Assembly (NCBI RefSeq): GCF_052425735.1 | Contig: NC_135760.1 | Coordinates: forward strand, 10,602,001 to 10,666,000 | DNA from: Oculina patagonica | Lineage: Eukaryota | DNA: 64,000 nucleotides | Reading direction: 5' to 3' | In this document: positions 36,801 through 43,800 of the stretch, piece by piece | How positions within the stretch are numbered: position 1 is the first letter of the stretch | How the letters are laid out: each line of letters opens with the position of its first letter | Notes under the pieces: model-generated | Database searches by the model: none | What the model was told of the DNA's origin: nothing | Seen by the model: the letters and a program-made list of their open reading frames with translations, nothing else | Position numbers and translations under genes: made by a program

Positions 36801-39800
36801 TATTTCGGGCTGATCCAAACCAGCCTTCTTCAGGTACAATGGAGTTTACATTGGCTGTGTTTACATTGGCTCGAGTTTACATTGGCTGTGTTTACCATTG
36901 GTCTGTGTTCTACCAGTTGGCTGAGTTTACATTGTTATGCTAACACAGCCAATGTAAACTCCATTTGTTTCCTCTGTATAGTGGCTGGTTGTGAACCAGC
37001 CGAAATATCGTTAGGATAAGAAGCTAAGTGCATTCTACGTATATATACGTTCATTTATTTTCAAATTCATTAAATGTGTAGTCCCACCGACCTCTTTTAG
37101 GACCGTCGTGTAACCAATCCTCGTCGTCCAGTTTCTTCTTGTCGGCGTCTTCCTCTTCCTCCTCCTCTGGGGGTTTCTTGATGATGATGGCGATTATGAG
37201 GGCGATTCCAAGGATTTTGATTGGTTGACTGATGAGCACGTCTTGAAAAAACGATATCAACATGGATGAAATCCACTGAGCAGATTTCTCTTTGCCAAAC
37301 TGCAACCCGTACAGGACACAGAAGAAAGCTGTCGTGAAACATGTCAGGAAGCAGATGACCCAAGCGATGTAGAGAAACCAATATGGCAGGAGCTTCTTCT
37401 TCTTCTTCTTTTTCTTTTTCATCTTTTTTTCCATTTCCTCCTTTCGCTCTTGTTTGGAAATTCTGAAGCTTATATCCTCGGATTCCACGCCTAAGCCTAG
37501 CGCAACTTCATCGCTTTCTGCCAAGTTTGTCTTTGAACTGAAGTCCAAAAACTGCTCTTCTTGTTTGGAGCCCGTATGCAGAATTTCGATGAAGTCGTTC
37601 TTGTTGTTTTTGTTGAAGTCGAAGAAGCAGAAAAACAACTCCTGGAACCACCAGCAGGTTCGTTTGCTGCGCCTCTCTCTGAGTTCTTCCTTTGTCGGTT
37701 TCGCTTCAACATTACGAAAGATTCCCACGATGAGGAGGTTAACTGGGATGATTATCAAACTGCTCATGATGCCGATTCCAATCTGCGCTGGACTGAACGC
37801 CAGGGGTCCAATCTGAAGTGTAGAGGCAGGATCAGATTCACCTCCAACCTGATAGAACATAGCGTTTGTGATCATAGAACAGTACAGCAGTGTTAAGCAA
37901 CAGGTTATGCGCTGAAGCCGCGTGAAACGACTCTTCGCAGGGCGGATGAAGACTGAGAACCAGAGGTGGCCATCAGCCAGGTTCTTCTGAGTGGTGGAGT
38001 AAAAGAGATGGTTGAAGCTCGTCATTTCATCGTGGCCTGCCACAGGAATTAACCTGTCGACCGTGCCATCACCTTCTTCTACTGCTAGCCAACTCTCGCA
38101 GATGAACAAGAACTTCTTGTCGTTGTTGAGGTCGTGAACGAGCACTCGACTTACATACCACGACGGTGAGCGACCTGCCATGAAAAAAGAAAGGAGTTAG
38201 AGAGCCGTTTGAAACGTGGTACAAAAATGGTACATGTTTGAGTTGGAAGCCCATGTAAAAAACTGTTAATTGTGAAAAACGGAGGTCAAAACAATGTGAA
38301 ACTTGTAGAAATCAACTAAGACGTGGCGTTGTGGAACGAGACAAGCGGTCTAGATCTGGATTGAATCACTGGTCGGGATCCCTGTGTTGTGTTCTTGGGC
38401 AAGACACTTTACTTTCATGGAGCCTCTCTCCACCCAGGTCTATAAATGGGTACCAGTGAATTTAATGCTGAGGGGAGGGGGGGGGGGGAGTAACCCTGCG
38501 ATTGACTAGCATCCTATCCAGGGGGGGGGAGTATAAATAGTCCTAGTCACTTCTTGCTACCGAAACCGGAGATATTAAAGCGCCGGCGTGATGCGATAAA
38601 GGCTCGAACGCGAAGTTTACCTTTATTACCCGATGCGAACATTTCCTGAAATCAAGCTTACCTGCATTATTATGCCATAGATGTAAGTAATTCAGTTCTC
38701 CAAAGCTTTCCGGAAACGTTGCCAAAAATACATCAATTCCACGTCGCTGAAACGTCTTACGTTTGGGATCTTTCAGCATGCGAGGCTCACTTTCACCTTC
38801 ATCTCCAGAGAGGATAAAGCTGACGTCAGCAGTAGTTCCCGCTTTTTTACCGTACCCCGTGTACACAGTTATCTCGTAATGGCACTGGTCATAAGGCTCG
38901 TTGTCTTCTAAAGGAGTTACTCCAGCCTGGAATAAAATAACATAAGATTTATTAGAAAAAAAAGCTGGCTTGGAATTACAAGTTTTTTTAACCGTATGTA
39001 AACAAGGAATAGGAACTTTTCAGCTGAGGTTCACGTGATAAAATTTCTATTAAAAAGATTGTATATTATGGAATATGGAGGGCAAGCTCTTGCCCTGCAG
39101 CAACATTTTTCATACAAATATTCATAATGTTTCAAAAAATACTTTTTTTTTTCTCTCCCTAACCCTTTAATGCTAGGGGCCTCAAACTTGGCCATTTTGC
39201 TATTTCAGATATGCTCTTTCCATTTTTGGCATTCATTAAGTGATAGCCCATAATTTTACAAAAAGTAGGTCACGTGATGGCCTAGCTACAAAATGCCTAT
39301 AAGCGATCAGAATATGCGTATAGTTAGTGCCCAGGTAATAAATCCTACAAATTAGGTAAGTGGTATATTATTTGAGCTGAAAATGGGTTTCAGAATGAGA
39401 TACCCTCCAAATGAAATAAAGCAAAAATTAAACATTTCATACCCGACCGATATCCTTTTTGTCTTCTCTTCGAGCATAAATAGCTAATATCATATAGACA
39501 CCAAATATTCCCAGAACAGCGGCCAGGGCGACTGGATTCTCTGCTAGATTGGCGTTGAAGACTTTGTTGAAGTCGATCGGGTTTGGCGCCACGAACATGC
39601 TACCTGTGAAGAAATGTTAACATCATACTGTTGAGTAGCGTAAAAGAAGCTCTCCTTCAGTAATCCATTGCTTGCTTCGAAGCTTTCAAACGCAGTGCTC
39701 TTGCCCGGAGCAAAATTTAACCGGCCAATTTGAACTGCCACTCAAATTCCTTAAGTCCTCTACTTTCCAGGCAAAAGAGAACGTTTTCTTGGTTTTGCAC

Positions 39801-40893: not shown

Positions 40894-43800
40894 GAAACTC
40901 TAAAGGATTGCAGTCCAAAACCTTCAATATTGTGCACTTTGGAGACAAAAATCAAGAAAATTTACCGCTCAAAGAGCTACGCGAGCGCGCGACTGTTTTC
41001 TATCGACGAATAGAAATCAGTGGGAGAACCAATCAGATTCGCGGATTTCCATTAGAACACAGCTGAGTTTCTACTAAAAGTGATTATTAGACACTCAACG
41101 TGCTCATTTGGAAATCCGCGAATCTGATTGGTTCTCCCAGCCTGAGTTTTCTGAGCGAATAGTCAACGAGACGCGGCCGAGATGACTATCGCTCATAGAA
41201 ATGAGGGCGAGTAGTCTTATTGTTTTAGTAGAAACTTTAAAACATTAAGAAAAAATGCCCCTTTGAAGAGCTAAGCGATCGTGTTCAATTTAATATAAGT
41301 AGAAAGCGATGAGAGAGAGTCCATCATATTCGCAGATTTTCAATAGACCACGGTAAGTGACTTTTACCTGCTATATGAAGTAAACAAACCCGAAAAGATA
41401 CTTTAAGCGATCGATGTTTGGGACAAATTTAGAATGATTCGTACAAAGACCAAGTCATAAGCTAATAACGTTAAGTTTATTAAAAAAGGTAGGCCGCATA
41501 AAATGACTTTCATACCTTGCAGCCTATTGTTGTCCAAGTGTTCTTTTCTTCATTAAACATTTTGCATGAAGGCAGGTAGATGCGCAGTGCATAGCTCGTG
41601 TTCACATCACCACTCAAGTCATCCTTGTTAATGATTTTCACGCCCAAATAAAACTGCTTGGCGGTCACATTCGCTAGCAATGTGGCCAGATCCGTACCAT
41701 TATCGCTGCCATTTTGACCATTTATCAACAGAGGGTTGATTAGTACATGTGGGATCACGTAGGTAAACGGATGAGGCCTTTTCTTCATTTTCTTCGCTTC
41801 TGTCTGACTTGGGAAATTATGTCCGAAGTCGTAATGGTTCGCAGTCGGTTTTTTGTCGTACCTCACTGCAACCATGAATTTGATGTCTGGATGAAAGAAT
41901 TTCATCTCTATAGCTATGGCCGCCTCGATGCTGGAGCGATTGAATTTATGCACACGCATCGGCGGATCGTCATCTGCAAAGTGGTTAAGCTCCATAGGTT
42001 TTACTGGGTTTACCTTGAGATTCCGAGGAACAAACATTTCTAGTTGTTGTCCTGCTAAGTCAAGTGGTTTGCCGTTACCATCCGTGAGTGATAAACCCAC
42101 TGTCTTGGAATTCAAATCGCTTGAGCTGTTATCCCAAGCAAACGGATTCTTATCCATGGCTGACAACTAAGTACAAGGAAAGAAAACGTATCTTACAGTT
42201 AGAAAAAGAAAGTGAACTGTAGATATTTGAGTAAATGCAAACTAATACCAGTCTTTCTGTATACACGCATTGCACACCTATTGTTGTATTGCGCATGAGC
42301 GAAGAGGAGAGGCAAGTCAAGCTATTAGTAGTTATTTTAAGACGATAATAAACGAAAGCAAATGTAGTTTAATCACTTGGCAGCCAATCGTCTCCTTATC
42401 CTGAACTGACGACTGACATCTCGGATACCTTATTATAGGAAATTAACGTTCCATTTTATTAACGCGAATTTCAAAATTTCGCGTTATTTTTTTTATTTTT
42501 ATTTATTATAAACATTTTTTTTATATATTTTTATCCAAATTTTTTTTTAATTTCTTTTTTTTTTTTTCCCCTTTTTTTTTTTCCTTTTTTTAATTCTCCC
42601 TTTTTTTTTTCTTATAAAGTAACGCATTTTCCAAAAGTATTTACTTAATACCAAGATTGCTTTTTCAATACATCCGTTTACTTCTATAAAAAAAGAAATT
42701 AGTAAGTAGTAAGTATGCAAACATGAATAAGAATGACGAGAGGATGGAGAACAGCCAACAATAAAGAAAACGCCAAAAAGAACCATCCCGAGCAAAATGA
42801 CTAAATAAAAATAATTAACTAATAATGACAGTTATAATGATACTAATAATAAGCAATTACATGATCTTTAACGTGAGGGGTAAAGAAGCCTAAAAACATT
42901 CAGAGCTTATAACGGGATTTGAACCCATGACCTCCGCGATACCGGTGCGTCGGTCTACAAACTGAGTTATAAAGCCTTACTTTGGAGCAAGGTACCTTTT
43001 GTGGGTTACATCTTTTCCATAAAAAATTTTTTCCTCCCTTAAATTTTTTTTTTTGAGAAAATTTGTTTTTAGGGGGGGGGAATTTTTTAAATTCATTTGT
43101 CCCGACAAAGTTTTTTTTTTTTTTTTTTGTAATTCCCCCAAAAATCCGGTACTTCTATTTTGTCTCGGTGGTCCTTGCAAATTCACGTTCGTTTCAAATA
43201 ACATTACTTATTCTGATAGAGCGGTTTTCACTTGAGTGTCGAAAGTAAGTTGCGTTTGCTTTGGTTTTGTATTACTTCGATTAGTGATTGGCTTAAAAAT
43301 CTCTCGCCACTTTCTCAGCCAATCAGAACTAAAACCAAAACCAATCGTGACTCACTCGGGCACTTTTTCCCGCGCTTCGTGCCAGCTACACGTATTTGCT
43401 TCGAGTTTTGATTGGTTCACTGGATTTTCTGTGTCCTTTGTGATTGGCCAGAGTAATTACTTTGGTTTTGGTTTTACAACACTCAATTGAAAACTGCTCT
43501 ACTACTGATGATAATATTAATAAAACTAACAATAAAAGCATTAATAATATTTTTACTAACAGTTGAACCAATAGCACTGGTAGCTCCTTCATCAACAGAG
43601 GCGTTGGCTCCTCCAAACAGCGCCATGGGGTCAGGTAGTCTAACTCCCCCCATCCCCTCCCCCTCTTCGGCATCCTCGTCATCGTCGGCTCCACCGATGC
43701 TGTCTAGAGTCTTTCTGCCAACAGACATGTCCAAATTTGGCGATGAAATCGATTTAGGTTTGTCCCCAGCCGCTAACTGCTTTAGGAGAGCACCGCTGAC

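Follow-up and report, generated by a model that had tools for sequence, protein, structure and literature searches.

Polycystin-1 and the adhesion class of G-protein-coupled receptors (GPCRs) carry a GAIN domain before their first transmembrane helix (TM1), and in autoproteolytic members its GPCR proteolysis site (GPS) has an H-x-S/T tripeptide at the turn between strands 12 and 13. It is still debated whether polycystins and adhesion GPCRs need GPS cleavage itself in order to function or just the GAIN fold with its buried stalk. A foreign protease can replace autoproteolysis in adhesion GPCRs, as seen with engineered enterokinase sites (PMC9674912, PMC11849108), and in Notch a furin cut (S1) inside the heterodimerization domain yields non-covalently associated subunits (PMC2726630). 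Here we describe a polycystin-1-type gene (PKD1 family, 11 transmembrane helices) on the minus strand of a 64,000-nucleotide stretch of the Oculina patagonica genome (assembly GCF_052425735.1, contig NC_135760.1, positions 10,602,001 to 10,666,000; hereafter the window, to whose numbering all coordinates refer). In this gene the residues for self-cleavage have been removed, and a protease-type basic site, long kept in many lineages, is found at the same bond.

The GPS turn and its replacement

The region of interest is spread over three exons. The upstream exon (41516–42166) encodes a GAIN subdomain-B-like sandwich and the N-terminal half of the GPS; its translation reads ...LPSCKMFNEEKNTWTTIGCK, with the end ...SCKMFNEEKNTWTTIGCK. 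Intron 1 (40462–41515, GT..AG) follows the residues GC-K, at a position common to paralogues and orthologues. The next exon (40248–40461) reads VGPKTIANSTHCLC, then TPGEDDAEEIEEEVEELVTTTLAPTTAASEGNVQTQTVKKVVTRKRFRR, then SVSKVNIA or, split more finely, VGPKTIANSTHCLC-TPGEDDAEEIEEEVEELVTTTLAPTTAASEGNVQTQTVKKVVT-RKRFRR-SVSKVNIA. Its first part (40420–40461) is the C-terminal half of the GPS with the last two GPS cysteines, and aligns with VGPK..C.C of the paralogues. In place of x-H-L there follows a 49-residue insert (40273–40419) that is acidic, then Thr/Ala-rich, then basic, so that 49 residues lead from C-L-C to the second Arg of RR. The insert closes with RKRFRR (40273–40290), a furin-type R-x-R-R with an additional Arg at P6 and with Ser-Val after it, and the exon ends with SVSKVNIA and the first base of a split Ser codon (40248–40272; placed by MAFFT with canonical paralogues). 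Beyond the lineage-specific intron 2 (39604–40247, GT..AG), the third exon (39443–39603) continues (S)SMFVAPNPIDF and then TM1, giving the remaining stalk (S)SMFVAPNPIDFNKVFNANLAENPVA, the helix and ARREDKKD. Exons, junctions (including 41516/40461) and residues match those of a preliminary description of this DNA exactly, on the minus strand.

Paralogues in the same 529-Mb genome show what the turn normally looks like. The TM1 exon has at least 78 matches there and the GAIN exon at least 32, and the GPS was read in 49 paralogues; an earlier look covered 11 loci that overlap partly with those genes. All 49 have H-L-[ST] right after the GPS cysteines (for example, VGPKSTPEATQCLCNHLSSFGGNFFVAPNPIDF) and run on without an intron into x-F-G-G-x-x-x-V-A-P-N-P-I-D-F, the canonical motif C-x-C-x-H-L-S/T-x-F lying in one exon. 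At the 11 earlier loci the GPS was located in eight, and it was canonical in each of them. Against the 49 paralogues, the window gene alone has an insert of about 50 residues at the GPS turn, which MAFFT places precisely after C-x-C-x and ahead of the H-L position. When residues are counted back from VAPNPIDF, the H-L|T of the paralogues corresponds to the S-K|V of SVSK-VNIAS. The window gene therefore lacks the tripeptide, having neither the His base nor the Ser/Thr nucleophile; in this gene and its orthologues position +1 is Val, Ile or Ala, and position −2 is not His. Because a linker (33–56 residues long across the orthologues described below) breaks the strand 12–13 turn, and neither His nor nucleophile is present, self-cleavage should be impossible; judged from these alignments, cis-autoproteolysis has almost certainly been lost in the window gene.

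The surrounding GPS is largely retained. Its cysteine framework (C..F..W..GC | ..C.C) aligns column by column with 40 or more same-genome paralogues, and the stalk strand is kept, VNIAS starting what corresponds to the strand of the stalk or tethered agonist. The Pfam GPS model, run on the separate exons, gave no match. The preliminary description had proposed that HL/T was lost, that the GPS Cys/Trp framework was intact, that the stalk was kept and that the furin-type site stood at the same topological position. The alignment with same-genome paralogues bears out the loss, with the insert exactly at the GPS turn, and the kept stalk, in which the SMFVAPNPIDF strand aligns. The framework claim stands for the cysteines but not for the tryptophans: the window clade has Phe in place of the first GPS Trp (CKMF, 41560–41571), compared with CLYW in the paralogues, and C-x-x-W is also found in the distant relative L021 (below). 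The position is the same to within four residues, RR|S lying four residues N-terminal to the scissile position.

Two of the paralogues (L035 and L058) have lost the last GPS cysteine and read C-x-T-N-H-L. Large tandem arrays of PKD1/REJ-like genes lie on contig C13 (~25.4–26.9 Mb and 0.7–1.0 Mb), with further arrays on C8 (~24.2–24.4 Mb), C4 (~26.6–26.9 Mb) and C7.

Transcripts and orthologues

The exon structure is borne out by Logan contigs from four runs, which represent four studies and three species labels; that these are RNA is a guess, but the contigs are spliced. They contain ~0.22 of the sampled words of the stretch in question, matching its exon content. In all four runs the junctions 41516|40461, 40248|39603 and 39443|38926 are joined across GT..AG introns, and in three of the four a single contig spans all four exons. 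The 214-nucleotide (nt) insert exon is complete in every contig placed on the window, and its skipping would cause a frameshift because 214 is not a multiple of three.

The feature would be an artefact if the true transcript used another exon or splice site that restored HL/T. An in-frame GT is present within the insert exon (GGTGAG, 40413–40418), and contigs may conceal rare isoforms; but the junctions from the four studies are identical, no contig uses this donor, its use would still yield no HL/T, and it is not conserved, orthologues reading GGCGAG and GGCGAA. A hidden HL[ST] micro-exon is ruled out, as introns 1 and 2 encode no HL[ST] in any frame. Distant orthologues carry the same arrangement in a single unbroken exon, so that the feature as such is free of the splicing caveat. 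An artefact of this kind is thus extremely improbable and already close to refuted. Both junctions around the insert exon on which the preliminary description had relied (41516/40461 and 40248/39603) are found in contigs of the four studies, and the alternative exon or splice site that would have undone its proposal appears in neither contigs nor introns.

Intron 1 contains, at 40780–41250, two direct repeat copies ~338 nt apart that are 89–90% identical and have internal inverted arms; their summed contig depth runs from thousands to tens of thousands, which marks a very abundant, transcribed repeat family. Intron 2 holds a nested palindromic element resembling a miniature inverted-repeat transposable element (40020–40243, with arms 40020–40045/40218–40243 and 40078–40106/40180–40208) that ends 4 nt from the donor and has a contig depth of 100–400, compared with 4–35 on the exons.

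The insert exon is also carried by close relatives of the window gene: L001, a scaffold from a coral-reef metagenome whose GAIN exon is 79% identical; L018, a genome contig; and, in other assemblies, six open reading frames (ORFs) of exon size. All have HCLC[TK]PGE, an acidic run and a Thr/Ala-rich run that varies through insertions and deletions, followed by the basic end [KQ][KQ]V[VI][TK]R-[KR]RF[KR]R-SVxK-[VI][SN][IFL]AS. The segment [KR]R[KR]RF[KR]R before SVxK is kept in seven of the eight distinct close orthologues, and Lys occupies the canonical P1 position in all eight. Codons for these Arg and Lys residues vary among species (AGA, CGA, AGG, CGG, AAG) while the residues stay constant, and the amino-acid polymorphisms seen in contigs (I24V, L36S and L36V) all fall within the variable middle of the insert. 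The Thr at P7, a possible link between glycosylation and cleavage, is not conserved and is Lys in other orthologues.

L001 (~511 nt) and L018 (~1008 nt) also have intron 2, but no canonical paralogue does and neither do the distant single-exon orthologues, so that it seems to be a gain specific to this lineage, within a Ser codon of the stalk. No full-length annotated orthologue was found, the representative search giving almost only exon-sized ORFs, and three sequences (P0004, P0007 and P0009) were left out because their contigs end before the next exon. Two GAIN-exon relatives, P0002 (61%) and P0005 (47%), were also left out. In P0062, an ORF of a 78-kb ENA contig, the GAIN exon contributes just its first 19 residues (MDKNPFAWDNSSSDLNSKT), fused directly to the end of the insert exon (VKKVVTRKRFKRSVSKVSFAS), as might result from an internal deletion, decay of the copy or misassembly.

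The arrangement extends well beyond this clade. A Tara scaffold (L021) has a GAIN exon ~40% identical to that of the window gene, compared with at most 31% for same-genome paralogues, and encodes VGPKTTFNSTQCICK-(insert)-RQVRKVVKR-VSFAGGFFTAPNPIDFDKAFAGFANLAENPVAF... in a single exon. Used as a query, this exon retrieved 18 more such sequences, giving 19 distinct distant sequences in total. In the window genome such an exon finds the window gene as its best match and no further copy with an insert; we therefore read the distant sequences as orthologues in other taxa, so that the insert arrangement is represented by 27 distinct orthologous sequences (8 close and 19 distant). All 19 lack HL[ST], have an insert of 33–56 residues, and end their basic run in an invariant Arg directly before [VA]-[ST]-F-A-[GS], in forms such as KKVVKR|VSFA, KVIKR|ATFA and RKITR|ATFA. 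In the paralogue alignment this [KT]-R|[VA] coincides with H-L|[ST], placing the Arg on the canonical P1 (the Leu of HL|T). Compared with the distant consensus [KR]-x-[VI]-[KT]-R|[VA]-[ST]-F, the window clade reads R-F-[KR]-R|S-V-x-K: it has retained KKVV[TK]R and carries nine extra residues, KRF[KR]RSVxK, that bring in a textbook furin motif and put Lys at the canonical P1.

These basic motifs exceed what composition predicts. With expectations taken from composition-preserving shuffles of the inserts, strict R-x-[KR]-R occurs once in the window insert (0.03 expected) and seven times in 13 complete orthologous inserts (0.55 expected), a count that includes independent instances in other lineages (RSKR in P0079 and RVRR in P0077). 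Each of the 13 inserts has nearly all of its Asp and Glu in the first 20 residues, and 5–9 of 6–10 Lys and Arg in the last 16. All 19 distant sequences have the looser convertase motif [KR]-x(0,2,4,6)-[KR], its P1 residue being Arg, but only a few have the strict form. The conserved R-x-x-R on which the preliminary description made its proposal depend is accordingly found in seven of eight close orthologues, under synonymous codon turnover; as a furin-type motif it holds for the close clade, whereas most distant sequences fit the general convertase pattern and not strict R-x-[KR]-R. Across all of these sequences the basic motif abutting the stalk strand is the one strictly kept feature of the linker, the rest varying in length and sequence, and by this comparison the substitution at the GPS turn is under selection.

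Among the distant orthologues, P0076 and P0079 have an additional site midway along the insert, RSKR, which is of the strict furin type; if both sites were used, the part of the linker after RSKR could be excised as a separate piece. Neighbouring exon-sized frames in L073 (a Logan contig) and L072 (an NCBI contig) lie only ~35–180 nt apart, so the introns there must be short, and L073 has no intron between GC-T and VGPK, a point at which the window gene, its close orthologues and the same-genome paralogues are split.

Possible cleavage of the basic linker

Topology and context are compatible with cleavage by a proprotein convertase. In the window gene the motif R-K-R-F-R-R|S-V has Arg at P1, and Ser-Val after the cleavage site is a favourable context for furin. 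Contigs join the TM1 exon to the first PLAT exon (38660–38926; Pfam PLAT, E 2.3e-10); PLAT follows TM1 and is cytoplasmic, and everything before TM1 is therefore extracellular or lumenal, including the basic site. More than 20 loci in the same genome match the proprotein-convertase P domain (P_proprotein) above the Pfam cut-off. Several of these are clustered, for example at ~28.8–29.7 Mb of contig C9, which suggests an expanded convertase family.

In this gene and its orthologues the C-x-C-x-H-L|S/T-x-F turn has been swapped for a linker of 33–56 residues with an acidic start, a Ser/Thr/Pro/Ala-rich middle and a basic end. We hypothesize that the protein is unable to cut itself and that a furin-like convertase cuts the basic site in the late secretory pathway. 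With the last GAIN strand still embedded in the sandwich, ectodomain and membrane part would remain a non-covalent pair, as Notch does after S1. Later removal of the ectodomain would then expose a stalk starting SVSKVNIASSMF, or VSFAGGFF in the distant clade; the candidate stalk peptides of the window gene are SVSKVNIASSMFVAP and VNIASSMFVAP. The preliminary description had likewise proposed cleavage by a convertase and a new N-terminus for the stalk, with O-glycosylation as a possible means of control.

Convertase cleavage during secretion is the most economical reading of the motif, and we give cleavage at the basic site a little under an even chance. Its generalization, that a cnidarian polycystin-1 orthogroup, possibly that of the hair-cell polycystin 1, has made the self-cutting GAIN bond dependent on an outside protease, we put forward tentatively, as plausible but short of probable. 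Several points weigh against cleavage by a convertase. Most distant sites read K-R|V or T-R|A, their P4 residue being Val, Glu or Lys, and conform to the loose pattern only, and Val at P1′ is unfavourable for furin; one close orthologue (P0058) has RFRK, with Lys at P1. The site may be inaccessible if the residues before the strand are strand-like, and the conserved polarity from acidic start to basic end might be explained by structure alone. PKD1L1 and PKDREJ, moreover, function without GPS cleavage (PMC9672506).

A competing reading is a receptor that is never cut, with a non-catalytic GAIN domain whose turn is a tolerated disordered loop and which signals without separation of its N-terminal and C-terminal fragments, like PKD1L1 and PKDREJ; the charged ends of the loop might pair electrostatically and so be kept together, or they might recognize a ligand, for instance sulfated glycans or cations. 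Such a reading draws on the conservation of charge polarity itself in all 13 complete inserts, on the missing strict furin consensus in most distant orthologues, and on precedent: in PKD1L1 and PKDREJ, which have no HL(T/S), GPS cleavage reportedly does not occur (PMC9672506), and several adhesion GPCRs are cleavage-resistant yet active (PMC13062082). We consider it unlikely, although well worth keeping in view, as charge pairing needs no invariant Arg or Lys exactly at the canonical P1, and the repeated independent gains of strict R-x-[KR]-R (RFRR, RSKR and RVRR) and the conserved Ser-Val would go unexplained. Alternatively, a trypsin-like extracellular or membrane serine protease might cut at the canonical position itself (K|V in the window clade, R|V or R|A in the others), and stalk exposure would be a regulated event, as in protease-activated receptors, rather than constitutive maturation. 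The sole basic residue common to both clades does align with the Leu of HL|T (Lys in 8 of 8 close and Arg in 19 of 19 distant sequences), and engineered enterokinase sites before the tethered agonist acutely activate adhesion GPCRs (PMC9674912, PMC11849108). Multibasic runs are present, however, instead of a single basic residue, the window clade has gained its textbook furin motif four residues upstream, and no candidate protease emerged from the analysis; this seems to us improbable.

If the site is cut, the two-chain status of the receptor is what is under selection and the enzyme that produces it is swappable, and polycystin maturation would be switchable by convertase inhibitors or point mutations. 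If it is not, the orthogroup offers a clean natural case of a polycystin-1-type receptor that works with a loop in place of the scissile turn.

Gene architecture and known systems

The gene as a whole extends over approximately 29466–60607 (minus strand; Pfam on large exons) and encodes, in order, WSC, PKD repeats, REJ, the GAIN-like domain, TM1, PLAT and TM2–11 with the PKD channel. WSC lies at 60299–60607, eight or more PKD repeats at 53719–56985 (Pfam PKD, E 1.9e-68, 8 stretches), and REJ on three exons at 51705–52091, 50435–50980 and 49450–49728 (E 5.6e-25, 1.7e-21 and 7.6e-06). PLAT is encoded at 38660–38926 and 37054–38196, and Polycystin_dom (E 1.5e-23) and PKD_channel (E 5.5e-49) at 29466–31049. 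It is a member of the PKD1 family, with PKD repeats and REJ in the ectodomain by Pfam, PLAT right after TM1 and a C-terminal channel-like block of six transmembrane helices.

Pfam did not name a domain on the upstream exon (41516–42166). An AlphaFold2 model of it built with 38 homologues (predicted local distance difference test, pLDDT, 87; predicted template-modelling score, pTM, 0.82; last strands missing from the model) has as its best match among Swiss-Prot AlphaFold models the pre-GPS segment of human PKD1L2 (residues 1118–1296, E 9.6e-8, template-modelling score 0.64), and further pre-GPS matches in mouse PKD1L2, both PKD1L3 proteins, the sea-urchin REJ protein suREJ1 and PKD1L1. On this model, the fold is of the polycystin type found next to the GPS. 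Foldseek and VIA-align searches against solved structures returned nothing more specific than generic beta-sandwiches (Z up to 7.8), with no solved GAIN domain among them; we know of no solved polycystin GAIN domain. A model of P0080, the sole contiguous fragment with late GAIN strands, insert and TM1, was uninformative (pLDDT 66, pTM 0.31), and a complex prediction for the GAIN and insert exons, which used no alignments, scored 0.00 and is evidence neither way. A sequence search of the PDB with the stalk/TM1 exon gave no match. The linker is probably disordered, as its composition suggests.

Among cnidarian proteins, Nematostella vectensis polycystin 1 (OK338071) is a hair-cell-specific marker and POU-IV target (PMC8846589). 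Its published domain list is the same (WSC, PKD, REJ, PLAT, TOP and 11 transmembrane helices; GPS is unlisted), and by this comparison of lists it may be the anemone member of the insert-bearing group, a link that would place the feature in a tractable mechanosensory cell. A PKD1-like protein of the Acropora digitifera skeletal matrix that is said to have a conserved GPS (aug_v2a.02830) is another paralogue: its N-terminus differs, and none of its eight mass-spectrometry peptides matches the window gene within a third of their length. Neither a convertase-type site at a GPS turn nor data on cnidarian polycystin 1 cleavage turned up in our search of the literature.

The window gene shares with the GAIN/GPS regions of PKD1 and adhesion GPCRs the position before TM1 and the four GPS cysteines, with PKD1 the overall architecture, the stalk strand x-x-F/I-[AG]-x-x-[FM]-F-V-A-P and the PLAT domain after TM1, and with PKD1L2 and PKD1L3 the modelled pre-GPS domain. 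Unlike autoproteolytic GAIN/GPS regions, it has no His base and no Ser/Thr nucleophile, and members of its orthogroup have a linker of 33–56 residues in the turn. In lacking the tripeptide it resembles PKD1L1 and PKDREJ, in which HL-T/S is lost and GPS cleavage is reported not to occur; it differs in that, in the literature consulted, those proteins are described with neither a long insert nor a conserved multibasic site where the scissile bond used to be. Convertases also process adhesion-GPCR ectodomains, for example ADGRB2 between CUB and TSP1 (10.1101/2023.03.12.532270), and a convertase/MMP-14 cascade is indicated for BAI1 in the reference lists of PMC13631675 and PMC13197933, but those sites lie outside the GAIN domain, a long way from the GPS, and none of them takes the place of the autoproteolytic bond. 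PKD1L1 and PKDREJ had already shown that HL/T can be lost; what seems to be new is the conserved basic site standing in its place.

The nearest functional parallel is Notch S1, where a furin-type site likewise sits in a loop of a juxtamembrane regulatory domain and the working form has two chains, as is predicted here; the folds are different (LNR/HD in Notch, GAIN in the window gene), and cleavage is demonstrated for Notch and predicted from the protein sequence in the present case. If the GAIN bond does depend on an outside protease, the parting of ectodomain and membrane part, and with it exposure of the stalk or tethered agonist, would come under the control of a convertase or a trypsin-like protease, and the window gene and its orthologues would represent both a natural counterpart of the engineered enterokinase- and thrombin-cleavable adhesion GPCRs and a case of convergence with Notch S1.

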